From assembly GCA_950097015.1 (NCBI GenBank), contig CATNEN010000041.1, forward strand, positions 2,356,001 to 2,420,000: a stretch of 64,000 bases of DNA, in the 5' to 3' direction. Under the pieces are notes generated by a model that saw only the letters and a program-made list of their open reading frames with translations, was not told where the DNA came from and did no database searches. The position numbers and the translations under genes were made by a program. Positions within the stretch are counted from its first letter, which is position 1, and every line of letters begins with the position of its first letter. Origin of the DNA: Macrostomum hystrix. Its lineage: Eukaryota; Animalia; Platyhelminthes. This document shows, in pieces, positions 5,291 through 37,444 of this stretch.

Positions 5291-6790
5291 AATTCTAGAC
5301 AACCTGCTGCTGACATCCATTTCACTGCTGCTCCAAATTCTAGACAACCTGCTGCTGACATCCATTTCACTGCTGCTCCAAATTCTAGACAACCTGCTGC
5401 TGACATCCATTTCACTGCTGCTCCAAATTCTATACAACCTGCTGCTGACATCCATTTCACTGCTGCTCCAAATTCTAGACAACCTGCTGCTGACATCCAT
5501 TTCCCTGCTGCTCCAAATTCTAAAGAACCTGCTGCTGACATCCATTTCACTGCTGCTCCAAATTCTAGACAACCTGCTGCTGACATCCATTTCACTGCTG
5601 CTCCAAATTCTAGACAACCTGCTGCTGACATCCATTTCACTGCTGCTCCAAATTCTAGACAACCTGCTGCTGACATCCATTTCACTGCTGCTCCAAATTC
5701 TAAAGAACCTGCTGCTGACATCCATTTCACTGCTGCTCCAAATTCTAAAGAACCTGCTGCTGACATCCATTTCACTGGTGCTCCAAATTCTAGACAACCT
5801 GCTGCTGACATCCATTTCACTGCTGCTCCAAATTCTAAGAACCTGCTGCTGACATCCATTTCACTGCTGCTCCAAATTCTAAAGAACCTGCTGCTGACAT
5901 CCATTTCACTGCTGCTCCAAATTCTAGACAACCTGCTGCTGACATCCATTTCACTGCTGCTCCAAATTCTAGACAACCTGCTGCTGACATCCATTTCACT
6001 GGTGCTCCAAATTCTAGACAACCTGCTGCTGACATCCATTTCACTGCTGCTCCAAATTCTAAAGAACCTGCTGCTGACATCCATTTCACTGCTGCTCCAA
6101 ATTCTAAAGAACCTGCTGCTGACATCCATTTCACTGCTGCTCCAAATTCTAAAGAACCTGCTGCTGACATCCATTTCCCTGCTGCTCCAAATTCTAAAGA
6201 ACCTGCTGCTGACATCCATTTCACTGCTGCTCCAAATTCTAAAGAACCTGCTGCTGACATCCATTTCACTGCTGCTCCAAATTCTAGACAACCTGCTGCT
6301 GACATCCATTTCACTGCTGCTCCAAATTCTAAAGAACCTGCTGCTGACATCCATTTCACTGCTGCTCCAAATTCTAGACAACCTGCTGCTGACATCCATT
6401 TCACTGCTGCTCCAAATTCTAAAGAACCTGCTGCTGACATCCATTTCACTGCTGCTCCAAATTCTAGACAACCTGCTGCTGACATCCATTTCACTGCTGC
6501 TCCAAATTCTAGACAACCTGCTGCTGACATCCATTTCACTGCTGCTCCAAATTCTAAAGAACCTGCTGCTGACATCCATTTCACTGCTGCTCCAAATTCT
6601 AGACAACCTGCTGCTGACATCCATTTCACTGCTGCTCCAAATTCTAGACAACCTGCTGCTGACATCCATTTCACTGCTGCTCCAAATTCTAGACAACCTG
6701 CTGCTGACATCCATTTCACTGCTGCTCCAAATTCTAGACAACCTGCTGCTGACATCCATTTCACTGCTGCTCCAAATTCTAAACAACCTG
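5291..6790. repeat. 45-bp minisatellite (about 33 copies)
   Basis: Unit ccaaattctagacaacctgctgctgacatccatttcactgctgct with a taaaga variant. Confidence 0.97.
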
Positions 6791-18316: not shown

Positions 18317-19068
18317 TCAGGATTTCTGTAGGACAACCTCCAGCAAGAGGGAGTCCTGATGCACCAGCGGGAGTGCAACCAGATCCCGTCCGCTTGCTGA
18401 GCTCCACCCAAGCAATCTTAATGTCTATGGCAGCTCGAGCATTTACCGGGCACTGAACCCAGCGACCACTCTCCAGTTTCAGACCAAGCGTGAACGTCGC
18501 CGACCAGTGCCAGAAATTTACATCCAGCAGTTTCTGCAGGCTTCCGAAGGCATCAACTTCGCCGCCAGGCAGCTGGCAGTCGGGTTTGCGCCTTCCTCAG
18601 TCGTCATCGACGAATTGCGAAGCGCTAATTCGCGTCACTCGCTCTGCGGTTTGGTTTTTAATACGAAGAGTGACGGACACAGGCAGGCAGGTGCCAACCA
18701 AGCCATCGTGCATGTGCCACTCGGTCGGCAGGTAGGCCTCCACGATCATCAGGAAGTTGGAGCACCAGCCGAACGGCGAGCAGCTGCCTGTCCACTTCAG
18801 GTATGGCTTCTTTCTGTCTAACAAAGTTCTCTGCCTTCTTCTGCACGTCCTGTCGGTCCGAGGTGCCACCAACCGGGACGACAACTGCGCCCTTGGAAAC
18901 GACCTCAACGACGGTCATCTTGCCTGGGATCGTCTCAGCACAAAAGCCAGTCCAGTGCAGCCCTGGGTGTTCCTGCGTAAACTCCAGCGCTTTCAGCCTG
19001 GCATCTGCATCGCTGGAGATGGGGCCGATTTGAACAAGCCAGTTCGAGTGGACGAAATTTATGACCAT
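18317..19068 (-). pseudogene. Intronless MVL-lectin-like repeat gene, disabled paralog of 32332-33087
   Basis: Aligns over its length with the intact copy when one frameshift near 18810, a TGG-to-TGA nonsense near 18598 and a second frameshift near 18390 are allowed; ends LLEVVLQKS* versus LVEVVVCKS*. Confidence 0.8.
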
Positions 19069-20031
19069 TGTATGTCAGTTGCGCACTAGCGAGTGTTGTT
19101 TCAAATGTCTCAGATAGATACGCTCAAGATCATTAGCCCATCAGTCAATTTTCATGAATTTTCAGTCTTTCAATGTGCGAACAAGCGAACAAGCGGATTC
19201 CTGCCACTTTCTGAATAATATTGAGCTATATAATCAGCTCACTGATGTTCGTCTGCCTCTGAGAAGGCAATAGACAGGGAGTTTAACAGAGGACTTCTCA
19301 GCTTTGAGCTCCAGTCTCTTGCGTGAATCGTTTGAATCTTTGAAGGCTAGGCAGAGACATGGAAGTGCGTGAGTCTTTGACGGATTGTGAAAAGACTTGT
19401 GAAAACGTTAGCTTATTTCGCTCTGGCAAAATTTCTGGCCTGTTCATGTTCACAGAGCTAAGCTTTCTAATTTTAGCGGTGTCGTTTTTCAACAAAAGTA
19501 CATTATAGCTCCAAAAGACGCCTCTTCCACCACTGCCTCCAACGCTAGCGACTTTTGTGATTAATTTTAAGCAAGATCAAATAAAATAAATACAATATAA
19601 GAAATAAACAATAAAACAAATACAATAAACGAAAGTGTGTCAACACTGGGTCGGCTAATGATACAAATTATAATTTTTATTAGGCCGAGCGGATCTAACC
19701 TTTTTATTTCTTGGGCTCTAAGACACAGATTAATCAGAAGGCTGGGAGAGAAAGAGTTAAAAATTTCAGCGAGTGAAGTGGATTGGGGGGAGAGAAGATT
19801 AATTTAAAAAGAGAATCACACAGCCAATCGTATCAATATTAGGCTAATAGCGGCTTCTTTGTGCCGCACGCCCACAGGTCGGCCGTTGGTGCAGCGGTCG
19901 GGTCAGATTAAGTCGGCCCAGCCTAGGGAGAAGTTCGAGGAGCATCCTCGAGAACCCAGTAGGTGTGTCACCTTGAGAGCGAACGTATAGAAAATGGTCC
20001 TCGGTGTTTAATCTTCCTGAGTCCCGTCACG

Positions 20032-21189
20032 CTATGGCCTCTGCTGCAGCTGCTGGACCTGCTGTTGCAGCTGCTGGACCTGCCGCTGCAGCTGATCGAC
20101 TAGGCTCGAGCGCTCGTCCAACGTAGTGAGCAGAGCACACAGCTGGGAGATCCCACCGAACCGCTCAGCCATCTGTTGGAGCTCCATGGTGCCATTAGCC
20201 CAGTTCGCGACATTGATCTGCAGCCTCTTGAACTGGTCGTAAATGCTTTCCAAACGCCGGTTCGTATCTGCGAGCTCATGACTGTCATCATTCGCTGCTG
20301 GACCCGCAGATGAGTGTGCCACTGTTCGGTATTAATGCAAATGATGAGAGAATTAAAGTAAAATACTGACGAGAAAAGCTAAAGTCAACTGCCTACCTTC
20401 CGCCTGACTTGCTTGCCTAAGCACTGAGTTCATCAGCTCAAGATGAGAGTCCGTGCATTGCTGGTAATGCTTATCAAGCTCAGATCTTAGGCCTCTCGCT
20501 TTACAGCCCAGGTGAGAGTACTTGCACTCGACTGGCCTCCCTGGACAGTCAGACAGGTGAGCCAGGTATGCTGTCCTGCTCATCGGAGTGCTCCGGTCAC
20601 TGCAGTGAGGACAGACAGCTGAGAACATCGGACAGCACACATCGGACTCCAGATTCCTGTGCCTGCTCTCCATCTCGCTGATGATCACCTGTTGAGTACA
20701 CTTGCCGCATCGCTCCTTTCTCTGCAGGCACTCTCTGTTGGAGTGGCGCTGCATGTCCCTCCTCGTCACCTGCTGGCCGCAGAGCTCGCACGGCAAAGCC
20801 TGGAAGTCGCAGCTGTCCAGATGCTGGTCCATGAGAGACCAGCTGAGTGCGGCAGAGCAGCCGGCACGCAGGTTCGGACACAGGACCTTCAGTCGGCCGA
20901 CCTCGCGTCTCGTCGCAATGTCGGGAAGACAGGAGGCCTGGCTCACCTCGATCTCCTCCGTGGTGTCTCTGCAGGCCTCCGTGTTTCCGGGACATCGCCG
21001 CTTCTCCACCGGTGACAGCAGGCCGGTGACGCAGGGCTGGCACAGGCGACATCCGTGCGGAGTCTGGAAGCCGTTGAACAGGGGCTGGGAGCAGCTGCTG
21101 CACTGCAGGTGGGTCGGCACAGTCGCGCCTTGAGGGGGCCGCGCAGCAGACACTCGCTTGGGCAGCTCTGCCACTTTGCTTGTGCTTAC
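20032..21189 (-). CDS. TRAF-like copy 3, MATH-less, no ATG of its own; exons 21189-20397 and 20321-20032
   Basis: Frame open from acceptor ttttacag|GTA AGC ACA AGC AAA GTG GCA GAG CTG CCC; GTG stands where other copies have ATG; an in-frame TAA lies just upstream of the acceptor; 75-bp phase-1 intron; exon 2 ends TAG. Confidence 0.75.
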
Positions 21190-21920
21190 CTGTAAAATTT
21201 ATATGGTGCTTTCAAATAATCAGAGGTGCAGTTGAGCGAATGATGAACTGTGGCAAAGAAAATATGGTTCTTTGTTATAAACATGTTTTTTAAACTTTTT
21301 GTAAAATGCATGAATCAACGGTCAGTTTAAAATGCTTCCTTCCTTAAAGCCTTCAGTAAGTAGTAAAGTATTCAAATCAGAAATGTAACGGTTCTTTATT
21401 ATTTAAACTCATCAGAACCAAATTGCGTTTTGCGCCAAATGCAGGCAATGTTGAGCGACTTCGACTATTGATCGCACCAGTCCTCTAAAAAAATTGAGAC
21501 ATGGTGACTTAAGTCTGCCGCAGGTTAGGCTGATTCACATGTGCTATTTTGCTTGTAGGTGCGCAAGCAATGTGGTCTCAAATTCTGAGCTAGTCAAAGG
21601 CGGAAATTCGTAGCTTCACGTCCCGAACCAACCCGCTTTTGCGGACAGCAAAAGGCAGCGGACTAATATTTTCACAAGCAAATTTTCCAACGTTGTGCAT
21701 TCTGTAGGCGATCAGAAATAAATGTCATCCATTTTATTTATTTTCGGGAAGTATACTTTCTTGTCTTTACTAGAATTTGTATTTGAAATGGGAGTGCAAA
21801 TCAGTATTGGGTTACTTGAATGAACTAGCCCGTCTACATTCAGGCCTGAATTACGCTCACGTCAGCTTGTGGCGTTGGAGACCTTGAAACTATAGCAATT
21901 CAAAGTGACAAGAGCAGTGC

Positions 21921-24403
21921 TCAACCCACACTTGATTTCCACAGAGCAGCACCTTCAGCGCCATCCACGTCAACGTAGTTCCGTGAGACACTATCATTTC
22001 TAAGCGTTGCTGCAGCTGCTTCAGCTGCTGATGAAGCTGATAATACTACTGCTGATGGTGAGACTGCTGATGCTGATGCTGATGCTACTGGTGATGCTGA
22101 TGAGACTACTGCTGATGGTGAGACTGCTGATGCTGATGCTGATGGTGAGACTGCTGATGAGACTACTGCTGATGGTGAGACTGCTGATGAGACTAATGCT
22201 GATGGTGAGACTGCTGATGCTGATGCCGATGCTACTGGTGATGCTGATGAGACTACTGCTGATGGTGAGACTGCTGATGAGACTAATGCTGATGGTGAGA
22301 CTGCTGATGCTGATGCTGATGCTACTGGTGATGCTGATGAGACTGCTGCTGATGGTGAGACTGCTGATGAGACTAATGCTGATGGTGAGACTGCTGATGC
22401 TGATGCCGATGCTACTGGTGATGCTGATGAGACTGCTGCTGATGGTGAGACTGCTGATGCTGATGCTGATGCTACTGGTGATGCTGATGAGACTACTGCT
22501 GATGGTGAGACTGCTGATGCTGATGCTGATGCTACTGGTGATGCTGATGAGACTGCTGCTGATGGTGAGACTGCTGATGCTGATGCTGATGCTACTGGTG
22601 ATGCTGATGAGACTACTGCTGATGGTGAGACTGCTGATGCTGATGCTGATGCTACTGGTGATGCTGATGAGACTGCTGCTGATGGTGAGACTGCTGATGC
22701 TGATGCTGATGCTACTGGTGATGCTGATGAGACTGCTGCTGATGGTGAGACTGCTGATGCTGATGCTGATGCTACTGGTGATGCTGATGAGACTACTGCT
22801 GATGGTGAGACTGCTGATGCTGATGCTGATGCTACTGGTGATGCTGATGAGACTGCTGCTGATGGTGAGACTGCTGATGAGACTACTGCTGATGGTGAGA
22901 CTGCTGTTGCTGATGCCGATGCTGATGCTACTGGTGATGCTGATGAGACTGCTGCTGATGGTGAGACTGCTGATGCTGATGCTGATGCTACTGGTGATGC
23001 TGATGAGACTGCTGCTGATGGTGAGACTGCTGATGCTGATGCTGATGCTACTGGTGATGCTGATGAGACTGCTGCTGATGGTGAGACTGCTGATGCTGAT
23101 GCTGATGCTACTGGTGATGCTGATGAGACTGCTGCTGATGGTGAGACTGCTGATGAGACTACTGCTGATGGTGAGACTACTGCTGATGGTGAGACTGCTG
23201 TTGCTGATGCTGATGCTGATGCTACTGGTGATGCTGATGAGACTGCTGCTGATGGTGAGACTGCTGATGCTGATGCTGATGCTACTGGTGATGCTGATGA
23301 GACTACTGCTGATGGTGAGACTGCTGATGCTGATGCTGATGCTACTGGTGATGCTGATGAGACTGCTGCTGATGGTGAGACTGCTGCTGATGGTGAGACT
23401 ACTGCTGATGGTGAGACTGCTGCTGATGGTGAGACTGCTGCTGATGGTGAGACTACTGCTGATGGTGAGACTGCTGTTGCTGATGCCGATGCTGCTGGCG
23501 ATGCTGATGAGACTGCTGCTGATGGTGAGACTGCTGATGCTGATGCCGATGCTGCTGGCGATGCTGATGAGACTGCTGCTGATGGTGAGACTGCTGATGA
23601 GACTACTGCTGATGGTGAGACTGCTGATGAGACTACTGCTGATGGTGAGACTGCTGATGCTGATGCTGATGATGAAACTGCTGATAATACTACTGCTGAT
23701 GGTGAGACTGCTGATGCTGATGCTGATGCTACTGGTGATGCTGATGAGACTACTGCTGATGGTGAGACTGCTGATGCTGATGCTGATGCTACTGGTGATG
23801 CTGATGAGACTGCTGCTGATGGTGAGACTGCTGATGCTGATGCCGATGCTGCTGGCGATGCTGATGAGACTGCTGCTGATGATGAAACTGCTGATAATAC
23901 TACTGCTGATGGTGAGACTGCTGATGCTGATGCTGATGCTGCTGGTGATGCTGATGAGACTGCTGCTGATGGTGAGACTGCTGATGCTGATGCCGATGCT
24001 GCTGGCGATGCTGATGAGACTGCTGCTGATGATGAAACTGCTGATAATACTACTGCTGATGGTGAGACTGCTGATGCTGATGCTGATGCTGCTGGTGATG
24101 CTGATGAGACTGCTGCTGTTTTTGTTGCAGCTGAAGATGTTGCTTCTGCTTCTTCTGCAACTGATGGTGTGGTTTCTGAAGCTGCCGTTGGCGGCCTCTT
24201 GGAGATGAGCGATTTGCCAGTTTCTGCTTGTTTCATAGCTCTTGTCAAGCGCTTTTTAAGCTGCCGCGTGCCTCCTGCGATCGGCAGACCTCTGGCTTCT
24301 AGCTCACTCCTGAGCTGGTGCCTTCTGAGTCCGGTCGGACGAGGGCTCAGCATCTGTTTGCCGAGTGACAGTTGGCAGAAACTTAGCCAAGGAGCGACAG
24401 ACA
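21921..24403 (-). CDS. SAP-domain protein with long Ser/Ala/Val/Pro-rich repeat region
   Basis: LRRHQLRSELEARGLPIAGGTRQLKKRLTRAM fits the SAP pattern. Acceptor ctgcag| at 24404 and an internal ATG (MLSPRP). Frame stays open through about 2.1 kb of repeat. Confidence 0.6.
22020..24115. repeat. Degenerate repeat with units of 3n bp inside the SAP ORF
   Basis: Modules such as gctgatggtgagactgctgatgctgatgctgatgctactggtgatgctgatgagactgct. Confidence 0.95.
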
Positions 24404-24638
24404 CTGCAGAGATAATAAACAGCTGGACGAGAGACAGAAGAGGAAAAGTTAAATAATGGTTTTGGCCTCCTTAGTTACTAAATATTGCGGCATTTGTAAC
24501 AAAGCACCTTTCTAAGCTAGACATGCCAAAAATGTATTTATTTTTTGCTGTCTGAGAGCCTTTGGAGCGAAGGGTGAACTCTGGTAAGTGTAGTTTAAAA
24601 CATTCGCCACGCTCATTAGTAAAATTAAAGGAATGAAA

Positions 24639-24680
24639 GGAAATTCCACGGTTAATCCACGGCTTACCCTTGTATTTATA
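24639..24680 (-). promoter_or_regulatory. TATA-like box plus kappaB-like site upstream of the SAP ORF
   Basis: ggaaattcc at 24639 and tatttata at 24673, the same module as at 17.5 and 30.8 kb in reverse orientation. Confidence 0.4.
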
Positions 24681-25519
24681 TAGGGTGATGCTTAGCCGTT
24701 AATTATAAAAATGCACAAAACGCAAAAGCAAGACATGCAGGTAGCCTACTACGAGGAGTAGACATTGGCTACTCGTATATAATACATTTTTTTATTCCCT
24801 AGAAATGCAACCGCAGCAACTCATGGAACGCATTAGAAGATGTTTGGTAAATTTGTGTAGGGAGCGCTGAGCAGTTGACGAAAAAAGCAGCAACAGAGAA
24901 GGGGCTTAAGGGCGTGCAAGCGAGTTCCTGTGTACAGTATCTGTGTTGTGAGCTGCGTCTCACAATGACCTTGCTCCGACCCCTGCGTCTCTAAGCCGGC
25001 CACCTGCTCAATCCAGTTCTGCCCGGCCCCGGCTTAGGCCACCCTCCTTTATCGTTGTTTGTCGCTCGCCCATTGGCTGCCCTCTGCGCCGTCTTCGCTA
25101 GTCCAATCAGGCCTCTCGCAAAGGAGTTATTCATTGACCGTGCTCAAACCTTGTTCCTCTGCCCGACCTCTGCTGCTGCCAAAAGCTCATCATCATCATC
25201 CTTCTCCTCCAGAGTCTTCCCTCGAGTCTGCGAAGCGTCGGTACTCCTCCAGACCGTCATCCACCTCTCTCTGGCGCTGTCGAGTGGCTACCCGCTCGCA
25301 GTCAAAGCCTTCGCACATCCTTCTGTGATCTGTGATTCCGGGCTTAGCGAGTGTCTGTACGCTCCAAGCCCATCCCGTCTCTCCTCGGAGTGTCTGAACG
25401 CCTCGAGGGTCGCTGCTTCCCATCCCTCCTCCCCCGGCAAGCTTTGGGCGGTCCGTACCCGAACCCCGGCTACCGCGTCGGCGAACTGCCGACGGTACAG
25501 ATAAAGTACAACATATGTA

Positions 25520-25600
25520 CGTGGGTGCTCAGGAGTCAGCGAAATTGGCAGAATTGCCTCCTCGCTGGCTGCGGGTCCGGTGTCAACAAATGATGTGCCA
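25520..25600 (+). mobile_element. 3' fragment of the tRNA-derived SINE family
   Basis: gtgctcaggagtcagcgaaattggcagaattgcctcc is the reverse complement of the SINE tail at 38167-38205. Confidence 0.55.
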
Positions 25601-25870
25601 TTGCGTGCAGCCCTCCTGCAATCATTTTTATTAAGAAGCTTAAGACTTAGTTATAAAATGGCATGTGCAGATGAACTCTACAAATTTTAGTTTTTGGTGG
25701 AAGCGAAAATTGCGCGCGAATCTCGTGGCAATTTGAAAAAAGCATACATGTGAAAACCATGTTCAGGGTATCAAGGCGAATATCTTTCAATATAAGTATG
25801 GCTATGCAACTCGCGTGACTATTGTGTCCAACGCCACCAGAGCGTGTTGGAATCCTCTGCTGCCGAAGAG

Positions 25871-28428
25871 CTACCGAAGCTGCAACTGCAGGCAGAATGG
25901 GTGGCCTCTGGCGTCTCCCACCAGCAGTCGGAGGCCGGACCCCGCAGCTTCATCACCATCGTTAGGCAGCAGTCGCAGCTCCGTCACCTGGCAGTTGTGG
26001 CGATAGAAACCCACCTGGAGATTTACCAGGTGGCAAAATGATTCAAATAGCGAGTAGCTAAAAAAGAGAGAATATTTTAGATCAATAGCAAATATTTTTA
26101 TAGTCGGAGAGCTTGTAAATCATCTGAATCTTGTCTCGTAATAGCAAGAGAAACAGAAATCTCAAAAAATTTAGTAATTTCAAACGCAACAATGCAATTA
26201 ATGAGGACAGTTAAGAAACGTGCCTCAACAAGCTGACTGTCCAGAGCTCTTGCCTCCATGCGCCAGACGCTGACTTCACCACCAGCGGAGGCCGAGGCAA
26301 GAAACGGCAACGCGCCCGAGAGGTCATCGCTGAGCAGGCAGATGGCCGTCACAGGGTGGTTGTGAGCCTGAAGTCGTTGATTGTAGTGGGAGCAGATTGA
26401 GCTCATTATCTATTCCAACAACCATTAAAACAATCGTAATTAATTATGTTATTTTCTTATAACCTTCAAAGTTTTTAACAAGCCACACACTGCTTTGAAA
26501 ACCAAGACTGTCAGATTAGAAACCGACATTGCACTAAAAATGAAAAAATTACCAGGAATCCAATGACAACGGGACGGACTTGCAGGTCCGATTGGAATAT
26601 CCGGACGACTGAGAGTCGGCCAGGCCGCGGATTCGTGAAAACGAAGAAAGCGTCGCCGCGCGTTTCACCGGTTGCACAGGCTAGCATCAGAGTCGACGAG
26701 CTGGTGGGCACATCGAGCGGCTCAGAGGTCCGCAGCCCGATAACGGTTGCCGCACCCGGAAGAGCAGTTCGCAGTTGGGCTGAAGTCACTCCGGGGTTGT
26801 GAAGCTGCCGAATCAGCAGCTGGCCTTGCTCGGGAATCTGTAGGAATACAGGCGGGCCTGATTGTGGGTCCAAGGTGACCCGGATCGGCATCAGATCGCC
26901 ATCGACCGCCACCAGACACAGGCTACAGTCTTGGAATGCGACGAGGGCCTCGTCGGTTCCGGGCACGGCGCAGATGGCGGCCACTGGAGACACGCTTTGC
27001 AGCAAACACCCGGCTCCAGCGGAAAGCAAATCTAGCGGTTCGGTGTCGGGGCCACGAAGTGACCAGCACTGCAGGCTCTGACTGCCAAGTCTCATCAGAC
27101 CAAGACACTGCTGCCAGCAGACCAGCAAAGCGGATGTGCACAGACACGCCAGATGGGTCACTCCGCCCCACTGCGGCGCGGCTTTAAGTCTGTGCTGCAG
27201 GCTCATGGAATCGAGATGCCAAAGCAGTAAAAGTCCGTCTGCGCCACCTGTGATTACAATACTAATATCGCCAAGTCGGCAGAGACAAGCAATGTTTACT
27301 CGGCCATTGTGTCCCGGCCTGAGGCCCATCTCCACCTGCGGAAGATCAGCTGGTCTCTGCGACTGAACTAAGCAGCCAGCAGAGACTGAGTCGTCAGTGG
27401 ACTGAAAATTTTAATTCTCATTGCAACACTTGGCTCATACACGTATATTGGCACATTTTATTTATGCATTCACATCACTCACAAAACAGACTTCACCAAC
27501 TCCTCCCAGGGAGCGCCCTCTGCCGGGCAATGGCTGCGTCGCACTCCAGCCAGAATTGCTTGCATCAAACTGGGTTGGCTCAGCTGGCATGGGCAACTCA
27601 GCCAATCTGTGGTCGAATGAGCTGGCTGTTGCACTCACTGAGTCAGAGGACTGCCGTCCTCGAAAATTCTCTGTGAATCACAATTGCTCAATATAGTTCT
27701 TTCTTTTTATGCAGCTCAAAACATCCATCAGACAGTGCACTTTAAATGCAAAACCTACCTTGAATCAGCCTGCAATTCAGTCTCGCCGGACATTCGGACA
27801 GGTGAGCCAGGTACGAGTTTCTGTCGAGCCTTAGTCTCGGGCTTCGGCAGTGAGGGCAGGCAGCTGAGAACATCGGACAGCACACATCGGACTCCAGATT
27901 CCTGTGCCTGCTCTCCATCTCACCAAAGGGCACCTGCTGAGAGCACAGCTCACAGCTCACTTTCCTCTGCAGGCACTCTCTGGTTGAGTGGCGCTGCATG
28001 TCCCTCCTCGTCACCTGCTGGCCGCAGAGCTCGCAAGGCAAAGCCTGGAAGTCGCAGCTGTCCAGATGCTGGTCCATGAGAGACCAGCTGAGTGCGGCAG
28101 AGCAGCCGGCACGCAGGTTCGGACACAGGACCTTCAGTCGGCCGACCTCACGTCTCGTCGCAATGTCGGGAAGACAGGAGGCCTGGCTCACCTCGATCTC
28201 CTCCGTGGTGTCTCTGCAGGCCTCCGTGTTTCCGGGACATCGCCGCTTCTCCACCGGTGACAGCAGGCCGGTGACGCAGGGCTGGCACAGGCGACATCCG
28301 TGCGGAGTCTGGAAGCCGTTGAACAGGGGCTGGGAGCAGCTGCTGCACTGCAGGTGGGTCGGCACAGTCGCGTCTTGAGGGGGCCGCGCAGCAGACACAC
28401 GCTGGGACAGCTCTAAAGACATAGACAT
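25871..28428 (-). CDS. Chimeric gene model: TRAF-like copy 4 (RING plus zinc fingers) spliced to WD40 exons; exons 28422(28428)-27759, 27670-27483, 27401-26553, 26409-26224, 26014-25871; about 676 aa
   Basis: TRAF exon truncated after HLSECP runs into donor CAAG|gtaggt. Exon lengths 664, 188, 849, 186 and 144 keep one open frame. WD40 motifs GHNGRVNIACL..VITGGADGLLLLWHL, HNHPVTAICL..LASASAGGEVSVWRM and HNCQVTEL..LLVGDARG. Intron 4 needs a GC donor or a weak GT. The WD40 exons are well supported; the fusion transcript is inferred. Confidence 0.65.
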
Positions 28429-28950
28429 GCTCAGCTGCACTGGGTCGGACGGTTGAGAAAGCTGTCTGGATAGATGAGCCTCTGAAACATATTCACTAAT
28501 TTTTAGTTTGCGCGAAAGCATTTTGAGCAGTTTAAACTGGTTCGACCATGTGCCATTGGACAGAAAACAGGTGCGTTCAAATCCTTCACATCGTTTGAAT
28601 TTAGGTGTCAAATTAAACACGTACAATCCTGTGCTCTGACCTCGTTGGCAGTGTACAAGCCTTAAAACTAGCCATGGGCATTCCGTGACGATTACTTCAA
28701 GGCACTAAATGTACAGTGAACATAGGTCACCCCCGCCCGTTTGTCACTAGCCCAAAAATAGCAAGGAAAACTCGAGTGTGTACGCAAGACAGTAACTGTT
28801 GAATATCTTCAGTCTCACAAAGCGCTTCCATGATTCATTGTGCACACAAACAAAGCTTTTGATCACATGTGAAGCGATAATTGAGCTGTTTTTTTTATTT
28901 TTTTCTTAGTACGAGTACGTTTCAAAATGATCAAAAAAATAAAAAAAGGC
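27800..28950 (-). repeat. Inverted segmental duplication of about 2750-3850 (TRAF copy 1 plus about 500 bp of upstream flank)
   Basis: Non-coding flank is shared, e.g. tgatcattttgaaacgcactcgtactaagaaaaa and agctcaattatcgcttcacatgtgatcaaaagc in reverse complement. Confidence 0.9.
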
Positions 28951-29627
28951 ATTATTAAGGCATGTTCTGTTCTGAGGTACCTCCCTAATGTATTTTGGAT
29001 TAAAAAATACCTAGCCACAAATCAACCAACCACAAAACATTTTTTAGCCAAGGAGCCCAAAAAGGGAAGTGCAGTTTTCATAATAATCTGTGAAATCGCT
29101 TCTGCTACTACAAGTGGTAGTGGTGCTTTTGCAAAAACCTGTCCTACTGTGAAGTCTCATCTCGTACATTGTCTTGCTAGGGCACGAATTTCCTAATTGA
29201 ACGTCCGGGCAAGTGGTTTGACAATGAGACTGAATCTTTGGCTACTGGCTCTGTGATTTTAATTGACTAAATTGCGAGGGCCGAAGTCCCGAGCGGTTTG
29301 TTAAAAATACACTCCTTAAATCTATGCACGCCTGTACATCTCTTTTTCGCTTTATGATGATTGAAATGCATTCGATATTTAATGGACCTAACTTGACCAA
29401 ATTTAAACTTTGAACGTGCATTTTTGGAAGGGAAATTATCACTCTTTAATTTTGAATCTTTTAGCAGCAAGGGAATTTTATGAAGTGCTCATGCTGATGA
29501 AAATGCTTATGTAACTGCTGAAATTGAGAGATATACTCGTAGTTTGTCCGTTAAACTTCTTCTTTTTGAAATAAGAGAAAGTCATTGATATTTTTATTTA
29601 TACAGTCACAAAGGGTGTGTTGTAAGC

Positions 29628-29690
29628 CAGGGGTCGGCAAACTCCGGCCCGCGGGCCTGATGCGGCCCTCGAAGCTCCTAAATCCGGCCC
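29628..29690 (+). mobile_element. Possible hAT-family terminal inverted repeat fragment
   Basis: CAGGGGTCGGCAAACT followed by cggcccgcgggc resembles Charlie/SPIN-type hAT ends. No partner TIR or TSD found. Confidence 0.4.
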
Positions 29691-29769
29691 CTAATCCCTT
29701 ACAACGTCTATAGTATTCGTCACATCTCTCCTGTGTCCCATCTCTCCTCGGTCTCATCTCTCCCATGAC

Positions 29770-30740
29770 TCAAGCCCTGTGTCTTAACTCTCCCCCATCT
29801 CATCTCTCCTTGTTTTATATCTTCTCTGTCATCCCTCATCCCTCCCCTGTCCCCTCTATCCCGTGCCTCATCCCTCCCCTGTCCCCTCTATCCCGTGCCT
29901 CATCTCTCTCCTGTCCCCTCTATCCCGTGCCTCATCCCTCCCCTGTCCCCTCTATCTTGTGTCTCATCCCTCTCCTGTCTCTTCTATCCCGCGCCTCATC
30001 ACTCCCCTGTCTCCTCTATCCTGTGTCTCATCCCTCCCCTGTCCCCTCTATCCCGTGCCTCATCCCTCCCTGTCCCCTCTATCCCGTGCCTCATCCCTCC
30101 CCTGTCCCCTCAATCCCGTGCCTCATCCCTCCCCTGTCCCCTCTATCCCGTGCCTCATCTCTCTCCTGTCCCCTCTATCCCGTGCCTCATCCCTCCCCTG
30201 TCCCCTCTATCCTGTGTCTCATCCCTCTCCTGTCTCTTCTATCCCGCGCCTCATCACTCCCCTGTCTCCTCTATCCTGTGTCTCATCCCTCCCCTGTCCC
30301 CTCTATCCCGTGCCTCATCCCTCCCTGTCCCCTCTATCCCGTGCCTCATCCCTCCCCTGTCCCCTCAATCCCGTGCCTCATCCCTCCCCTGTCCCCTCTA
30401 TCCCGTGCCTCATCTCTCTCCTGTCTCATCTATCCTGTGTCTCATCCCTCCCCTGTCTCATATCTCCCCTGCCTCATATCCTATGTCTAATCTCTCCCCT
30501 GTCTCATCACTCCCCTGTCTCATCTCTCCTCTGTCTCATCTCTCCCCTGTCTCATCTCTCCCCTGTCTCATCCATCCTGTTGTCTCATCTCTCCTGTTTT
30601 ATCTATCCTGTTGTCCCATCTCTTCCGTGTCTTATCTCTCCCCTGTCTCATATCTTCCCCGCCTCAATCTCCCCTGTCTCAGCTCTCCCCTGTCTCATCT
30701 CTCCCGTGTCTCATCTCTCCCGTTTGTCCTATTCCTATTC
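29770..30740. repeat. Pyrimidine-rich degenerate minisatellite (about 32-bp units) with a higher-order duplication
   Basis: Unit cccgtgcctcatccctcccctgtcccctctat; one multi-unit block recurs about 240 bp later. Confidence 0.92.
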
Positions 30741-30839
30741 CTACGTTTGTCCTATTCCTATTCCTCGTATAATTAATTAATTAATTAATTAATAAATTAG
30801 TCCGCACGCTAACAAGCTTGCGGACCTCTGTCGTAGCAC

Positions 30840-30885
30840 TATAAATAGCTCTTGCAAAATGACACGGCATTTCCGTGGAATTTCC
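30840..30885. promoter_or_regulatory. TATA-like box plus two kappaB-like sites
   Basis: tataaata at 30840, ggcatttcc at 30866, ggaatttcc at 30877. Confidence 0.4.
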
Positions 30886-31778
30886 GTTGCAAAAATCCAG
30901 CCCGTGGTGAAGGGAGTGCACATTTAAAAGGATTTGCATATAGGGTGGGGTTAGACCGCTTGATACTGCCTTTAAGACACCCCACCTGGGTCGCCAAGCT
31001 CTGTTTGACAGACATTTGGGCCGCTTTTGCAGACTTAGATTAGGGTTTTTGCTGACTAGCTAATAAAAATACTTCTGCAAAGTATTCTACAAACTGTGGG
31101 CCAGTGCAGTAAATTTCAGTAAGTTTTAATGGATAGTTTGAAGCATTGAATTTGGTATACTCAACCCTGTTGCTACCTTTACGTAAACGCATTTCTTATG
31201 CTTTCCTACTCGTAATTTATTTTTGTAGGATCAAATGTAATTAATTATAATCTGGACGAAATAAATATACAGGCCTATGCGAAAAAAACATTCTTTATAC
31301 GTGTACTGGAGCAATCCAAAAAAGGCCGATAGCTAGTAGCCAATTATGCTGTGCTCAAAACGGTAGGCAAATCGCGCTAACCAACCACTTGAACCGGAGG
31401 GGGGAGCCTCCACACGTTTATTATATAACTCAGTGCAAATAGGCTAAAACGGAGGGGGTGGGTGGACGATGCCACTGCACAATGCGAACGAGGGTTAGAG
31501 AAACAAGGTGAGTGCGCACAGTGGAAGCGGGCGTACAGTAATTGTAAATAAGGTAGATTTAAAAAAGCATACAGCGAGTCAGCGACCAATCATACCACCT
31601 GCCTCCCGAACAATACGAGTAGTTACCTCTCTCCGTATTGACTAAGTGTTAATGAACACAAGCTGCAGCGTATTGTTTCAAGTGAAGGATTTTCTATTTA
31701 AGGGAAAGCGGTGTAGTGGTAGCGTGGGTGTGAAGGAAGGCTATTAAAAGTTAATGAAAGCCGAAGTAACATTGTAAC

Positions 31779-31831
31779 GGAATTGCCACGGAATTGCCGC
31801 GGAGTTTCCCCGGCATTTCCGCGTAATTTCC
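31779..31831. promoter_or_regulatory. Five kappaB-like sites at exact 11-bp spacing
   Basis: ggaattgcc, ggaattgcc, ggagtttcc, ggcatttcc and gtaatttcc starting at 31779, 31790, 31801, 31812 and 31823. Confidence 0.45.
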
Positions 31832-32331
31832 ACTGGTTTAGCGTCGATTTGCCCTTGCTCGCTCTGGAGCAGGGGCTTAGGCAAGTTTATTATTTTTTCT
31901 GTGGTGTTTTGTTCATATTGATGATTTAAGCATTCCTTTGGGTAATTGGTTGATTATCGAAGCCAAATTTCTCGAAGGTGGTGGAGTCGTCGTGTGAAGT
32001 TAGCAAGCGGCATACGTATTGTGCTTCTGGTGCAGCGAAAAACGGAGTGTTGATTGCACTTACGACAAAAAAGACTCGCATACATATTTTCACAATAGCG
32101 TAAACAATCTCATAATGTGTATCAGCCATGGCATTTGCTCTGTCGATTTATTATTCATCCATTGACTTACCATGACCTCGATCTGTGCATACTATTATTT
32201 ACATTAGTAATCCGCCATTGACAGGACGAATTGCTAAATATGAAGAGCATTTACTATTTATATTACCAGCAGCAAATCATTTAAAAAATCTTTCAATTGA
32301 TTAGTCGTTTTCCAACAAAGTTCGTGATCGG

Positions 32332-33087
32332 TCATGACTTGCAAACGACCACCTCCACCAGGCGCGATCCCGGCTCCACCAGGTGGTAAGCTGACAGGCC
32401 GTGGTCTCCGCACAACTTCCACTGGCTGTTCCTGGCGCTGTCGATGGCGATCTGGTGGTTCAACCGAAAACGCAGGCGCCGCCCGCTCTGAAATGCGAGC
32501 CAAACTGTGAGCCGGGCTGAAGGGCTCCAGAAGTTCAGATCCAGCTCCTTTTCCACGTGGCCTTGCTCATCGATTCGCTGGCCGGGGAGCTGGCCCGAGG
32601 GCTGGCGAGCTCCCCAGTCGTTGTCATCAGTTTCCCGGACTGCGACTGCAGTAACACAGTCAGACGAGAGGTTCGTCATTCGGAACCTTGTTTCGACAGG
32701 CAGGCAGGCGGCTTCAGAGCCCCCGTGCGCGAGCCACTCGGAGAGCAGCGAGGCCTGGACTTGGATTTGGAAGTCCCTGAGCCAGCCGGTGTGCGAGCAG
32801 TTCGCGACCCACTTCAGGTACGGGTACCTTCTCAGGAAGTCAACGATTTTGCTTTCCGCTTCTCTGTGGCTTGAAATCGGGCCGAGAGAGACCAGAAAGC
32901 ACCCCGCGGAGGCGACGCGGATTCGGGAAAACTTTTCGGACTCGGTAGCGTCCCAGCTGCCAGTCCAGAGCAGCCCTGGGTGCTGCTGCTCGAACTGCTG
33001 GGCCTTTAGCTGAGCGTCAACCGCGTCCCAGATTTTGCCGATGCGAACCGGCCAGCTTTGTTGTGAGTTCAAGAAGGTCAAGACCAT
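32332..33087 (-). CDS. Intronless 251-aa protein: two MVL (mannan-binding lectin)-like repeats plus an unassigned beta-rich C-terminal domain
   Basis: Long open frame with coding-like GC in AT-rich flanks and a diverged paralog at 18.3-19.1 kb. IGKIWDAVDAQ...WTGSW and LGPISSHREAE...LKWV resemble the MVL repeat pattern GPLWSNxEAQ...FTGQW...MSVVEV (recalled, not searched). Confidence 0.8.
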   Translation of the reverse strand: MVLTFLNSQQSWPVRIGKIWDAVDAQLKAQQFEQQHPGLLWTGSWDATESEKFSRIRVASAGCFLVSLGPISSHREAESKIVDFLRRYPYLKWVANCSHTGWLRDFQIQVQASLLSEWLAHGGSEAACLPVETRFRMTNLSSDCVTAVAVRETDDNDWGARQPSGQLPGQRIDEQGHVEKELDLNFWSPSARLTVWLAFQSGRRLRFRLNHQIAIDSARNSQWKLCGDHGLSAYHLVEPGSRLVEVVVCKS

Positions 33088-33649
33088 CAAGCAATTGCTA
33101 ATAAAGCCTGCCCAGTCTTCTACAGTTCTGAAAAATATTTATAGGCTCTCCCAGACTGACATTTGACTTGGCTGGAAAAAAGGACGGAATTTTCCATTAT
33201 ATTCACGTTTCATTGCTAAAAATATATTTCTCACATGCCCTCCAGTGTACAAGCGGCGGTGCATGCATGCAGGTGACATGCAGCTGGGTTGTTGAACTAC
33301 CTTGTAGATTGAAGTGCCAAAATTAATGCGAGCGTTGCGAGCGCAAATACGAGCTATACTCCAAAAAGTATATTTATAGAGCCTGAGCCACCAGTGCTCT
33401 GATAACGCGTTGCTAGATCGCACACGTGAATGTTGGTGTGATTCACTGCGAGGCCAGAATCAAGAGTATAAATATTTTTGTTGCTAGGACTAGTGCATCA
33501 AATTATACCCAACCACGCAATACGAAAATAGGATTCTTCGATAGGCTGCTAGGCTACCACAAGGAAATATAATAGGGCTGGTCAATGATATCATTCTCAA
33601 CGACTTGGTAAGGATTCTGATGAATTCTGATAAATCTGAAGGATTTGCT

Positions 33650-35215
33650 AAGGATTCTGATGATGGATTCTGATGAATTCCTAAGGATTTCCCTAGGATT
33701 ATGATGGATTCTGAGGGATTCCTAAGGATTTCCCTAGGATTATGATGGATTCTGATGAATTCCTAAGGATTTCCCTAGGATTATGATGGATTCTGATGAA
33801 TTCCTAAGGATTTCCCTAGGATTATGATGGATTCTGATGAATTCCTAAGGATTTCCCTAGGATTATGATGGATTCTGATGAATTCCTAAGGATTTCCCTA
33901 GGATTATGATGGATTCTGATGAATTCCTAAGGATTTCCCTAGGATTATGATGGATTCTGATGAATTCCTAAGGATTTCCCTAGGATTATGATGGATTCTG
34001 ATGAATTCCTAAGGATTTCCCTAGGATTATGATGGATTCTGAGAGATTCGTTAAGGTTCCGAAGTATTCTGAGTGCTTTAACAATGATTAGGATTGATTT
34101 TTAAGGATTTTACTTAGGATTATGATGGAAACTTAAGGAGTTGCTTAGGATTATGATGGAAACTTAAGGAGTTGCTTAGGATTATGATGGAAACTTAAGG
34201 AGTTGCTTAGGATTATGATGGAAACTTAAGGAGTTGCTTAGGATTATGGATTCTTAAGGATTTACATAGGATGATGGATTCTTAAGGATTTACATAGGAT
34301 GATGGATTCTTAAGGATTTACATAGGATGATGGATTCTTAAGGATTTACATAGGATGATGGATTCTTAAGGATTTACATAGGATGATGGATTCATAAGGA
34401 TTTACATAGGATGATGGATTCATAAGGATTTACATAGGATGATGGATTCTTAAGGATTTACATAGGATGATGGATTACTAAGGATTTACATAGGATGATG
34501 GATTCTTAAGGATTTACATAGGATGATGGATTCTTAAGGATTTACATAGGATGATGGATTCATAAGGATTTACATAGGATGATGGATTACTAAGGATTTA
34601 CATAGGATGATGGATTCTTAAGGATTTACATAGGATGATGGATTCTTAAGGATTTACATAGGATGATGGATTCATAAGGATTTACATAGGATGATGGATT
34701 CTTAAGGATTTACATAGGATGATGTATTCTTAAGGATTTACATAGGATGATGGATTCTTAAGGATTTACATAGGATGATGGATTCATAAGGATTTACATA
34801 GGATGATGGATTCTTAAGGATTTACATAGGATGATGGATTCATAAGGATTTACATAGTATGATGGATTACTAAGGATTTACATAGGATGATGGATTCTTA
34901 AGGATTTACATAGGATGATGGATTCTTAAGGATTTACATAGGATGATGGATTACTAAGGATTTACATAGGATGATGGATTCTTAAGGATTTACATAGGAT
35001 GATGGATTCTTAAGGATTTACATAGGATGATGGATTCATAAGGATTTACATAGGATGATGGATTCTTAAGGATTTACATAGGATGATGGATTCTTAAGGA
35101 TTTACATAGGATGATGGATTCTTAAGGATTTACATAGGATGATGGATTCTTAAGGATTTACATAGGATGATGGATTCTTAAGGATTTACATAGGATGATG
35201 GATTCATAAGGATTC
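33650..35215. repeat. Composite minisatellite of related 41-bp, 32-bp and 28-bp units
   Basis: cctaaggatttccctaggattatgatggattctgatgaatt, then cttaaggagttgcttaggattatgatggaaa-type units, then ggatgatggattcttaaggatttacata. Confidence 0.95.
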
Positions 35216-35637: not shown

Positions 35638-36867
35638 TCAATGCACCTGCTGCTGCAGCTGTTGCAGCTGTTGCTGCAGTCGTGCCAGCTGTTGCTGCAG
35701 CTGATCAATGCACCTGGTGCGCTCATCCAGCTGAGCCAGCAGAGTCCGAAGCTGCGACACGCCGCCGAACCGGTCTGCCATCTGCTCGAGCTCATTGGTG
35801 CTGTGCGCCCAGTTGGCCACGTTCACCTGCAGCCTCTTGAACTGGTCGTACACGCTGCCGACTCGCCGCTTCACGTCGGCCAACTCTCGGCTTTCGACAG
35901 GAGTCGCCGAGCTGGCCGAAGACTGCGACACTGCGAACGCTAAAATGCAAAGGCAAGGAGAGGAGGCGAACGTCTGTCAGCGAAAATTCGTTCTTGCTTT
36001 GAGTCACATAACGGAGCTCTCAGCCTTGTGTCTGGAATTGTGATATCACTTGTGCTAAGGCAACAGCGAGAGCATTTCACCTGCTGTCTGAGGCAGCATC
36101 GCGGCCTGTCGGAGCCTTGAGTCCACGAGCTCCAGGTGAGAGTCCATGCATTCCCTGTAGTGCTTATCCATCTCGGACCTTCGGGCTCTTGTCTGGCAGC
36201 CCAGGTGAGAGTACTTGCACTCGACTGGCCTCTCTGGACAGTCAGACAGGTGAGCCAGGTATGCTGGCCTGTTCATCGGAGTGCTCCGGTCACCGCAGTG
36301 AGGACAGGCAGCTGAGAACATCGGACAGCACACATCGGACTCCAGATTCCTGTGCCTGCTCTCCATCTCACCAAAGGGCACCTGCTGAGAGCACAGCTCA
36401 CAGCTCACTTTCCTCTGCAGGCACTCTCTGTTGGAGTGGCGCTGCATGTCCCTCCTCGTCACCTGCTGGCCGCAGAGCTCGCACGGCAAAGCCTGGAAGT
36501 CGCAGCTGTCCAGATGCTGGTCCATGAGAGACCAGCTGAGTGCAGCAGAGCAGCCGACACGCAGGTTCGGACACAGGACCTTCAGTCGGCCGACCTCGCG
36601 TCTCGTCGCAATGTCGGGAAGACAGGAGGCCTGGCTCACCTCGATCTCCTCCGTGGTGTCTCTGCAGGCCTCCGTGTTTCCGGGACATCGCCGCTTCTCC
36701 ACCGGTGACAGCAGGCCGGTGACGCAGGGCTGGCACAGGCGACATCCGTGCGGAGTCTGGAAGCCGTTGAACAGGGGCTGGGAGCAGCTGCTGCACTGCA
36801 GGTGAGTCGGCACAGTCGCCTCTTGAGGGGACCGCGCATCAGACACTCGCTTGGGCAGTTCTGACAT
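35638..36867 (-). CDS. TRAF-like copy 5, MATH-less; exons 36867-36081 and 35939-35638
   Basis: Intact RING and zinc-finger exon, donor G|gtgaaa, acceptor ttttag|, coiled-coil exon ending QQVH* at an internal tandem duplication. Confidence 0.88.
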
Positions 36868-37444
36868 TGTTCCTTCTTTGGGCCTTAATGTTGTGCAGTC
36901 GTTTAGCATTTTTAGCTGAGTTTTTCTATTACTTTCTTTTTATAGCAAAGCATTTAGGCCTAATTAAGTCAGAGTTTGTACCTTCTTAGTTCGATCTTGT
37001 GAGCTAATAAAAAGAGCTATTTGCAAACTATTGACTAAAAGTTTGAGCGCCTTTTTGTCTAAATTGCTTTGCTTTATGGCGGAGTGAGCTAGTGTGTGTA
37101 ATTTACATGTAACTGGGCTTCTAATCTATATTACTTTGCAGCTAAATCCGTGTCCATTGTAGAATTATATAAACGATCCAGACCGTTCCTTTATTTAGTA
37201 ACTTAGTGACATCCTTGATTCTGCGATGCGTTCTGTGTTTTTTGCCCGAACTGGCTTTGGCCGGGTACTCGGTGTGTGCACATTGTGCATGGAGGATGTT
37301 AAGAAAGCCTTGCAGTGCGGAAATCATTTTTAAAAAAGCCCAGAAGAAGCTTCTGGGTAGTTTTGCATGACACTTGCCGAGATATTTTTATCTAGCTAAA
37401 ACACACGAAAAACGACAGAGAATGCCGATCGGTTCTGCTTTCGT

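Follow-up and report, generated by a model that had tools for sequence, protein, structure and literature searches.

The question raised by this locus is how two minus-strand reading frames with repeats resembling the MVL lectin come to lie within a cluster of animal TRAF genes, and what their products might do there. The window (the whole 64,000-nucleotide stretch of DNA analysed here) holds one copy near 19 kb and another near 33 kb. Our preferred answer, which we hold with somewhat better than even confidence, is that the 33-kb copy is a transcribed animal gene for a leaderless binding protein, composed of MVL repeats and a beta-sandwich, from an old family that is patchily distributed among eukaryotes.

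The 33-kb copy (32332..33087, minus strand) is an intact ORF of 251 codons, with its stop codon at 32332-32334 and an in-frame TAA (33139-33141, minus strand) closing the frame on its upstream side. A preliminary description of this DNA had reported two intronless minus-strand paralogs; both are present at the positions given there and are clearly related (tblastn E 6.8e-40, 40% protein identity), but only the 33-kb ORF is intact; in the 19-kb copy the frame shifts twice and is also interrupted by an in-frame TGA. Transcript-like contigs (32045..33060, minus strand) cover most of the 33-kb ORF and about 290 nt of 3' UTR, as a 1016-nt contig at a depth of 54.5 in run X5 and a 994-nt contig at a depth of 38.5 in run X6, each with zero differences. 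Both are collinear with the gene and have no joints, in agreement with the absence of introns first described; their 5' end lies 27 nt short of the ATG, and in both runs coverage is absent at 33143-34200. That these contigs of runs X5 and X6 represent RNA is judged from their pattern of coverage. A TATAAATAT box (33135..33143, minus strand), a putative promoter element, precedes the ATG by about 50 nt, and next to it is a TTTTTCAG acceptor-like site (33128-33135, minus strand); both were identified by direct inspection of the sequence. As the preliminary description had proposed, the protein has no signal peptide, and no transmembrane segment was found (maximum 19-residue hydropathy 1.2); it was not found among the public protein sets searched. 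We conclude that a genuine animal gene, unannotated and independent of its neighbours, is transcribed from the 33-kb locus.

The animal TRAF cluster described as its surroundings was likewise recovered, as eight TRAF-like paralogs with zf-TRAF Pfam matches, one of which has a MATH domain. The TRAF-like gene upstream of the 33-kb copy (35638..36909, minus strand) encodes a RING, a zf-TRAF region (Pfam E 2.9e-14) and a coiled coil, and no MATH domain was found in it. It is spanned from 36870 to 35719 by tblastn with the 50-kb TRAF as query, and bears out the earlier remark on intron-bearing neighbours with at least one short intron, the ORF stopping at 36055 and homology resuming from 35931. A further TRAF-like gene (20095..21174, minus strand), which lies on the upstream side of the broken copy, shares 93% DNA identity with the exon of the 36-kb TRAF. 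Between the 36-kb TRAF and the MVL-like gene, tandem arrays at 33611..35214 (41 bp x 10.5 and 28 bp x 39.6, Tandem Repeats Finder) contain GGATTTCC-type motifs; the strict kappaB consensus is not enriched within the window. Integration into the host genome is indicated by TRAF genes flanking the MVL-like gene on the same sequence and by the transcript-like contigs that cover it, and the host is an animal, probably a flatworm.

The N-terminal part of the 33-kb protein consists of two repeats, which score 47.1 bits (repeat 1, residues 12-61; 32905..33054, minus strand) and 21.1 bits (the degenerate repeat 2, residues 64-113; 32749..32898, minus strand) on a eukaryote-type repeat HMM. The Pfam MVL profile (PF12151), proposed earlier as a check, matched neither window copy even at E<=1, and the claim of MVL-type repeats therefore fails as a direct profile match; as a statement of homology it stands, but only when intermediate sequences and a profile built from the family are brought in. 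An exhaustive phmmer search with the window protein returned 17 relatives, of which many exceed the MVL threshold; P0004-P0010 pass PF12151 with 28-235 bits against a cut-off of 25, and the window protein alone reaches MVL-positive proteins at E 6e-13 to 1e-10 (phmmer). The profile of alignment A2, which has the window protein as its first row, matches MVL itself (1zhq_A) at E 1.9e-12, with profile positions 4-104 on chain residues 5-111 and both repeats included, and a profile including the window N-terminus retrieved 30 proteins, nearly all with PF12151. In the alignment-based AF2 model (mean pLDDT 73.7; 80-93 in the repeats) each repeat is a strand-helix-strand-strand unit, and the suggested structural check of this half succeeded: VIA-align places 105 of 113 residues on 1zhq_A (Z 7.5) and Foldseek matches MVL Q9RHG4 at 22% identity, both matches spanning residues 9-115 of the model. 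The N-terminal repeats are homologous to MVL.

Whether they still bind sugar is less certain. Repeat 1 keeps both family tryptophans (GKIWDA, WTGSWDAT), with GP changed to GK, WNQ to WDA and MSV to FSR; in repeat 2 the Trp of GPIW is replaced by Ser and WTGxW by WVANC (alignments A1, A2). One or both of these Trp positions are lost to Ser or Cys in three of the four window repeats, namely repeat 2 of the 33-kb copy and both repeats of the 19-kb copy. Williams and colleagues are said to have found, in 2005, that the GP[IL]W[NS] and WTGxWxTT motifs line the sugar cleft of MVL. MVL itself binds the oligomannoside core (Man3GlcNAc2). In the window protein, which has no direct Pfam MVL match and many substitutions at conserved motif positions, the ability to bind sugar may have changed or disappeared, and the glycan sensor or effector role put forward in the preliminary description is one that we would word conditionally.

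That description had also noted that the second repeat is degenerate and that the C-terminal domain, roughly 125 residues long, is beta-rich. Both features are present. Its guess was that this domain might be aegerolysin- or actinoporin-like. At the level of fold the guess holds, most of the best structural matches being actinoporins, aegerolysins and their fold relatives. Residues 127-251 (32335..32709, minus strand) are predicted to form a beta-sandwich of about eight strands, in a model built on about six informative sequences and with loop pLDDT of 44-60. Foldseek ranks actinoporins first among both PDB entries and Swiss-Prot models (probability 1.0; FraC in the PDB at E 1.6e-4), and VIA-align, by whose own note a Z of 8 is in the middling range, aligns 105-117 residues with FraC residues 26-179 (Z 8.0-8.8, rmsd 3.4-4.0), 109 of the 118 residues of Cry34Ab1 (Z 7.6), and OlyA/PlyA (Z 6.7-7.1). 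The same names recur in four structural searches, of which one did not depend on Foldseek: actinoporins, Cry34Ab1, OlyA/PlyA, Nakanori, bryoporin, TDH and the Sclerotium lectin. Sequence profiles lend no such support, as Pfam actinoporin and aegerolysin profiles matched neither window protein at E<=1, and for relatives P0001-P0003 no Pfam match apart from MVL was found at E<=0.1. The conserved motifs DWG, N[FY]W and QW are no more than candidates for an actinoporin-type aromatic phosphocholine-binding cluster.

The sandwich might instead be a generic protein-contact module of the adaptor-binding or C2-like kind, in which case the protein would serve as an adaptor for TRAF or E3 ligases and would not bind membranes. 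This is unlikely, though several observations favour it: the Vps13 adaptor-binding sandwich matches the model as well as FraC does (Z 7.9-8.6), C2 and MSP domains reach Z 5-6, the gene sits amid the TRAF paralogs, and P0009, from another eukaryote, fuses three MVL repeats to a Sina-type RING (Sina_RING 40.5 bits). The Foldseek ranking, which uses 3Di+AA, argues for actinoporins, however, and the aegerolysin and actinoporin matches extend over 109-117 residues, nearly the whole domain, whereas those to Vps13 cover 85-92.

The 19-kb copy (18317..19068, minus strand) contains the repeat-1 peptide quoted in the preliminary description, but has decayed into a pseudogene. Three-frame translation and tblastn locate its frameshifts at about 18815-18817 and about 18394-18398, and an in-frame TGA at 18597-18599 occupies the conserved Trp position of the DWG motif (all minus strand); it was aligned to the 33-kb copy with an X placed at each break. 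Runs X5-X8 do not contain this stretch. Both window copies end at the same aligned position. Elsewhere in the family the protein continues for about 240 further residues, a tail that is hydrophobic in three of the four members with it and of which there is no trace within the window. Because the two copies are only 40% identical, the family is old in this genome.

These features invite a bleaker reading, that the family is decaying here, with the 33-kb copy transcribed but no longer binding sugar or maintaining any function, and the 19-kb copy further along the same path. The three disabling lesions, the tryptophan losses, the missing tail and the long repeat branches in the tree described below are all compatible with it. 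We nonetheless consider it decidedly improbable, since the 251-codon frame is fully open despite 60% divergence from its paralog, the family-invariant sandwich positions (DWG, RQP, LD.N[FY]W, AID and QW) are retained, and contig depth is 38-54 in two runs and zero in the flank.

Turning to origin, the preliminary description had called the repeats cyanobacterial-type and horizontally acquired. The full architecture of MVL repeats and sandwich was found in only four 90%-identity clusters (P0001/P0020, P0002, P0003 and P0026), three from an exhaustive search of 1.84 billion representatives and one from a word-index search. P0001, which the 33-kb protein matches at E 1e-28 (phmmer), derives from a Sphagnum microbiome metagenome (PMC9584203). 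All are single ORFs on sparse, eukaryote-like contigs, two of which bear animal markers. A DEG/ENaC exon is present on one contig, and on one a fragment was read by eye as a LINE reverse transcriptase. A recent acquisition of a cyanobacterial MVL gene by an animal lineage, followed by domestication, would fit an intronless gene among intron-bearing neighbours, this very patchy distribution, and a family known as mainly bacterial and, in one paper, as found only in bacteria (PMC10655256). Neither term survives the comparison of the repeats, however. Those of the 33-kb copy score only 21.7 and 3.7 bits on the bacterial Cys-type profile, repeat 1 faring about 25 bits better on the eukaryote-type profile, and a tree of the repeats (short, with 49 columns and long branches) groups the window repeats with eukaryote-type rows, apart from bacterial and cyanobacterial rows, in a split with 99% SH-aLRT. 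The proposed survey of taxonomic distribution and phylogeny did find MVL relatives, but profiles and tree did not return bacterial nearest relatives with the animal sequence nested among them. The repeats look like a eukaryote-type MVL subfamily, judged by sequence, which lacks signal peptides and the Cys pair. Since their type is that of eukaryotes and not of cyanobacteria, a recent transfer from bacteria finds no support; the derived fusion shared with the nearest relatives and the divergence of the two window copies also argue against it, and we regard it as very unlikely. An ancient transfer into eukaryotes is possible. That the ORFs are foreign to the animal genome, through contamination or misassembly, is scarcely credible, since nothing favours it beyond the family's non-animal reputation, whereas TRAF genes stand on either side of both copies within a single unbroken sequence, the decayed copy implies long residence, gene GC (0.60 and 0.56, against 0.50 for the window) shows no abrupt break, and transcript contigs from runs under two further organism labels match at 98-99%.

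Under the preferred reading, of a transcribed gene for a leaderless protein of an old eukaryotic family, the 33-kb product would comprise two modules, a tandem pair of MVL-family lectin repeats followed by the sandwich, and its most likely mode of working would be bivalent binding. Repeat 1, which alone keeps both family tryptophans, may bind carbohydrate with altered specificity, while the sandwich might attach to a surface of membrane lipids or glycans; characterised members of the actinoporin, aegerolysin and fungal-lectin fold class bind membrane lipids or glycans. We infer ligand binding, a probably cytoplasmic location and any immune role suggested by the TRAF genes, and the protein would then be akin to leaderless defence lectins and aegerolysin-type proteins. 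The family would be an old one, with scattered representatives among animals and small eukaryotes, the lineage in the window having presumably lost the tail before its two copies diverged and the 19-kb copy having decayed later. At the outer edge of what we would entertain, an MVL head on an actinoporin-like sandwich could represent an undescribed class of invertebrate cytosolic sensor, which links exposed glycans or damaged membranes to RING/TRAF-type ubiquitin ligases; the repeated pairing of the gene with TRAF genes in the cluster, and the RING fusion of P0009, hint in this direction.

Comparison with known systems places both modules. MVL of Microcystis viridis (PF12151; PDB 1zhq/1zhs) and the window protein each have two tandem repeats of about 50 residues, with the common pattern G-P-x-W ... 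A ... W-T-G-x-W-x-T-T ... M-S-V, the same predicted strand-helix-strand-strand unit, and no signal peptide. MVL, however, is a stand-alone homodimeric lectin of 113 residues, whereas the window repeats form the head of a 251-residue protein, are part of a separate subfamily marked by an H-P-x-L-x-W motif, fall below the direct Pfam threshold and, in three of four cases, no longer keep conserved Trp, Asn and Thr positions. With actinoporins (FraC, equinatoxin II, sticholysin II; PF06369) the protein shares the predicted sandwich core, but where they have a long amphipathic N-terminal helix it has the lectin repeats, followed by some 15 residues of linker modelled with low confidence (pLDDT about 44; helix at 117-121 only). 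The pore-forming helix (about 25-30 residues) is missing, FraC alignments starting at residues 26-29, so that actinoporin-style pore formation by this protein alone is not expected; a sequence-profile match and the RGD tripeptide are absent as well. OlyA/PlyA, Cry34Ab1, RahU, Nakanori and the Sclerotium rolfsii lectin belong to the same fold class (Z 6.1-7.6, 104-113 residues), and aegerolysins (PF06355) and related binders are small leaderless sandwiches that bind lipids or glycans and form no pores by themselves; the window protein differs from them in lacking sequence similarity and in fusing its sandwich to a lectin head. In the literature we found no protein described as joining an MVL head to an actinoporin-like sandwich. 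The modular logic is nevertheless that of CEL-III, LSL and natterin/Dln1-type proteins, in which a sugar-binding head is joined to a membrane-interacting beta module; in those proteins the head is of the ricin-B or jacalin type and the pore module is aerolysin-type or of another kind, whereas here the head is of the MVL family.

The 33-kb copy, one of two genes in the window with repeats resembling the Microcystis viridis mannan-binding lectin (MVL), is an unbroken minus-strand reading frame at 32332-33090, in which the ATG at 33087 opens 251 codons. Its protein matches the 19-kb copy (18317-19068, minus strand) in two frames by tblastn, with a joint E-value of 6.8e-40, and three-frame reading of the latter revealed three breaks. 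These comprise a one-base frame shift at approximately 18815-18817, which is not an intron because homology is contiguous on either side; an in-frame TGA at 18597-18599, replacing the DWG-motif tryptophan that is present in every relative; and a second frame shift at approximately 18394-18398. In comparisons, the pieces of this copy were kept separate, or linked only by X. Protein identity between the copies is 40%, with a shared end point in the alignment, and the DNA of the MVL-like copies can be aligned only over short stretches, at 68-79% identity; both copies are old. The two diverged paralogs of the preliminary description are thus both present, but the 19-kb copy, with two frame shifts and a TGA, is a pseudogene.

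Public sequencing runs inform the status of the intact copy. Contigs from two coded runs, X5 and X6 (depth 54 and 38 respectively), match 32045-33060 without any difference but do not reach the ATG, which lies 27 nt beyond their end. Examined over the stretch that stops before the tandem repeat at 34246-34393, they display no joints, and the next upstream kilobase is without coverage. Judged from its pattern alone, and although the library type is unrecorded, this coverage is as expected of a transcript. A TATAAATAT box lies approximately 50 nt 5' of the ATG, and an in-frame stop within this box closes the frame. Parts of the 33-kb reading frame recur at approximately 98-99% identity in runs of two further coded organism labels, variants in runs X1 and X3 are few and lie near contig ends, and X5-X8 are not among the runs that carry the 19-kb stretch.

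Homology between the window repeats and MVL is established by transitive and profile evidence. The MVL Pfam profile, PF12151, had no direct match to either copy, even at E<=1; the 252-aa protein of the 33-kb copy found no match among Pfam, PDB sequences or a word-index homolog search, and an ESM Atlas feature search with it was uninformative (scores <=0.78). Across 1.84 billion representatives, phmmer run exhaustively returned 17 relatives, with E-values from 1e-28 to 5e-4. The 33-kb protein itself was absent from the results of both homolog searches, in which the best match was 34% identical. Among the numbered relatives, P0004-P0010 score above the PF12151 cut-off, reaching 235 bits, and a profile of the family alignment, with the window protein as its first row, matches the MVL structures 1zhq/1zhs at E 1.9e-12, over both repeats. 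A profile built from the family's N-terminal halves recovered 30 proteins, nearly all of which are recorded with PF12151 and which include a Roseibium protein named mannan-binding lectin. As AlphaFold reached a pLDDT of only 40 from the single sequence, a model based on the family alignment was used instead, with pLDDT of 80-93 across the repeats; these match MVL in both Foldseek and VIA-align, and an Atlas fold search yielded, besides a single MVL cluster, only bacterial clusters that are small and unnamed. The initial recognition of MVL repeats is therefore upheld.

For the C-terminal domain (residues 127-251), AlphaFold with an alignment predicts a sandwich of approximately eight strands, at a confidence that varies along the domain and with only some six sequences informing this region. 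In a Foldseek search of the PDB, the actinoporins FraC, equinatoxin and sticholysin ranked at the top (E 1.6e-4 and up, probability 1.0), followed by Cry34Ab1, ostreolysin/pleurotolysin A and TDH, and actinoporins made up 23 of the top 25 matches among Swiss-Prot models. VIA-align of the PDB matches gave Z 8.0-8.8 for FraC (105-117 residues), 7.6 for Cry34Ab1 (109/118 residues) and 7.0 for OlyA/PlyA, and a wide VIA-align search conducted independently of Foldseek placed FraC top at Z 8.0, with Nakanori, bryoporin, RahU and a Sclerotium lectin among other matches; a Z of approximately 8 is frequent even where a model has no genuine counterpart. An adaptor-binding sandwich of Vps13 scored equally to the actinoporin matches, and no Pfam sequence profile connects residues 127-251 with the actinoporin or aegerolysin families. 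The best match among AlphaFold DB clusters, to residues 133-252, is residues 5-122 of D6WYB1, an uncharacterised protein of 340 aa (E 1.5e-6, 22% identity, rmsd 3.9 over 130 columns). Apart from this AlphaFold DB match, the best matches agreed across the four structure searches, and the earlier guess of an aegerolysin/actinoporin-like domain accordingly holds at the level of predicted fold.

The combination of repeats and sandwich is common to only four clusters at 90% identity, namely P0001/P0020, P0002, P0003 and P0026; a profile search for further full-length members returned P0003 and P0026 only. Metagenome scans found no relative with an alignment query and, with P0001 alone, 14 loci, all of which match the MVL part only and none of which is full-length. 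All four clusters carry an extra tail of approximately 190-240 residues, with strongly hydrophobic segments in three of them; in the window, six-frame tblastn and HMM searches for this tail yielded nothing better than E 3, and an Atlas search with it gave no match. Each full-architecture gene is one unbroken reading frame on a gene-poor, AT-richer contig. One such contig bears a DEG/ENaC exon, and that carrying P0001, derived from a Sphagnum microbiome metagenome (PMC9584203), ends in a fragment (6292-6609, minus strand) judged by eye to be the C-terminal end of a LINE-type reverse transcriptase of animal kind. On the sequences available, the nearest relatives of the window protein are eukaryote-like, and share with it a derived fusion. 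Separately, an 82-aa 'hypothetical protein, partial [Klebsiella pneumoniae]' (P0053), from a 249-bp contig, is near-identical to repeat 2 of the eukaryote-type protein P0026, and probably represents contamination in an assembly labelled Klebsiella pneumoniae.

The repeats themselves bear on the proposal that these genes are of cyanobacterial type and were horizontally acquired. In bacterial relatives, a signal peptide is combined with a conserved cysteine pair, and cyanobacterial MVL-like proteins form a small group apart. A third type of relative, which has neither leader nor cysteine pair and bears an H-P-x-L-x-W motif, looks eukaryotic; its members include an Ectocarpus protein, a protein whose 1.09-Mb contig holds small, sparse reading frames, and P0009/P0025, from ENA contigs of approximately 1.6 kb, in which three MVL repeats precede a C-terminal Sina-type RING (PF21362, 40.5 bits). 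The latter pair is, incidentally, a lectin-E3 ligase fusion of eukaryotic source. The 33-kb repeats reach 47.1 and 21.1 bits with the eukaryote-type profile versus 21.7 and 3.7 with the bacterial profile. A repeat tree of only 49 alignment columns, with long branches for the window, places the window, the full-architecture proteins and the third type together at a split supported by 99% SH-aLRT. One or both family tryptophans are gone from three of the four window repeats, and both are kept only in repeat 1 of the intact copy. Because the repeats are eukaryote-type, the relatives with the same derived fusion are eukaryote-like, and the copies are old, the suggested origin is not supported. The family looks old and patchy among eukaryotes, rather than a recent cyanobacterial import; an ancient transfer into eukaryotes is possible.

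Both copies lie among eight TRAF-like paralogs with zf-TRAF Pfam matches, which extend across 48 kb (3318-51456) at approximately 3.3, 16, 21, 28, 36, 44, 46 and 50 kb. Their RING/zinc-finger exons share 64-88% protein identity. The 21-kb and 36-kb TRAF exons have 93% identity in DNA, and the 36-kb gene contains a short intron. A MATH domain is detectable only in the copy at 49846-51456, whose protein is similar to animal TRAF clusters only. Tandem arrays separate the 36-kb TRAF from the 33-kb copy (33611-35214, including a tandem repeat at 34246-34393), and these, like an array downstream of the copy (31778-31833), have units with GGATTTCC or GGAATTTCC; matches to the strict kappaB consensus GGGRNWYYCC show no enrichment across the window, numbering 3 against 4.4 expected. 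Elsewhere in the cluster, an 827-aa open frame between two TRAF genes (21921-24404, minus strand) consists almost entirely of Ser/Ala/Val/Pro repeats in tandem units of 60/90/150/180 bp, and a 32-bp array at 29834-30577 (23 copies, 87% matches) leaves three plus-strand frames open, all Pro/Ser/Leu-rich.

The MVL family is regarded as bacterial in the searchable literature (PMC10655256), in which we found no paper on animal MVL repeats or on a fusion of MVL with a sandwich. The 33-kb copy appears to be an expressed animal gene of a eukaryote-type MVL branch, seemingly missing from public protein sets. Its domain combination of tandem MVL head and actinoporin/aegerolysin-like sandwich is one for which we found no earlier description; other lineages carry an additional tail, which is hydrophobic in most of them. 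As far as appears, a story of recent cyanobacterial import gives way to one of an old, patchy eukaryotic family, and a regenerative flatworm model gains a candidate leaderless protein, inexpensive to test, for binding to glycans and membranes. We judge a leaderless binding protein to be the likeliest function, in which docking onto a lipid or glycan surface would fall to the sandwich, with carbohydrate binding contributed by repeat 1. An immune role is suggested solely by the TRAF neighbourhood and one MVL-RING fusion elsewhere. FraC is alignable only from residue 26-29 on, such that its pore-forming helix is without a counterpart in the 33-kb protein, and pore formation by this protein alone is not expected. 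Its proposed mode would instead resemble that of aegerolysins and cytoplasmic defence lectins.
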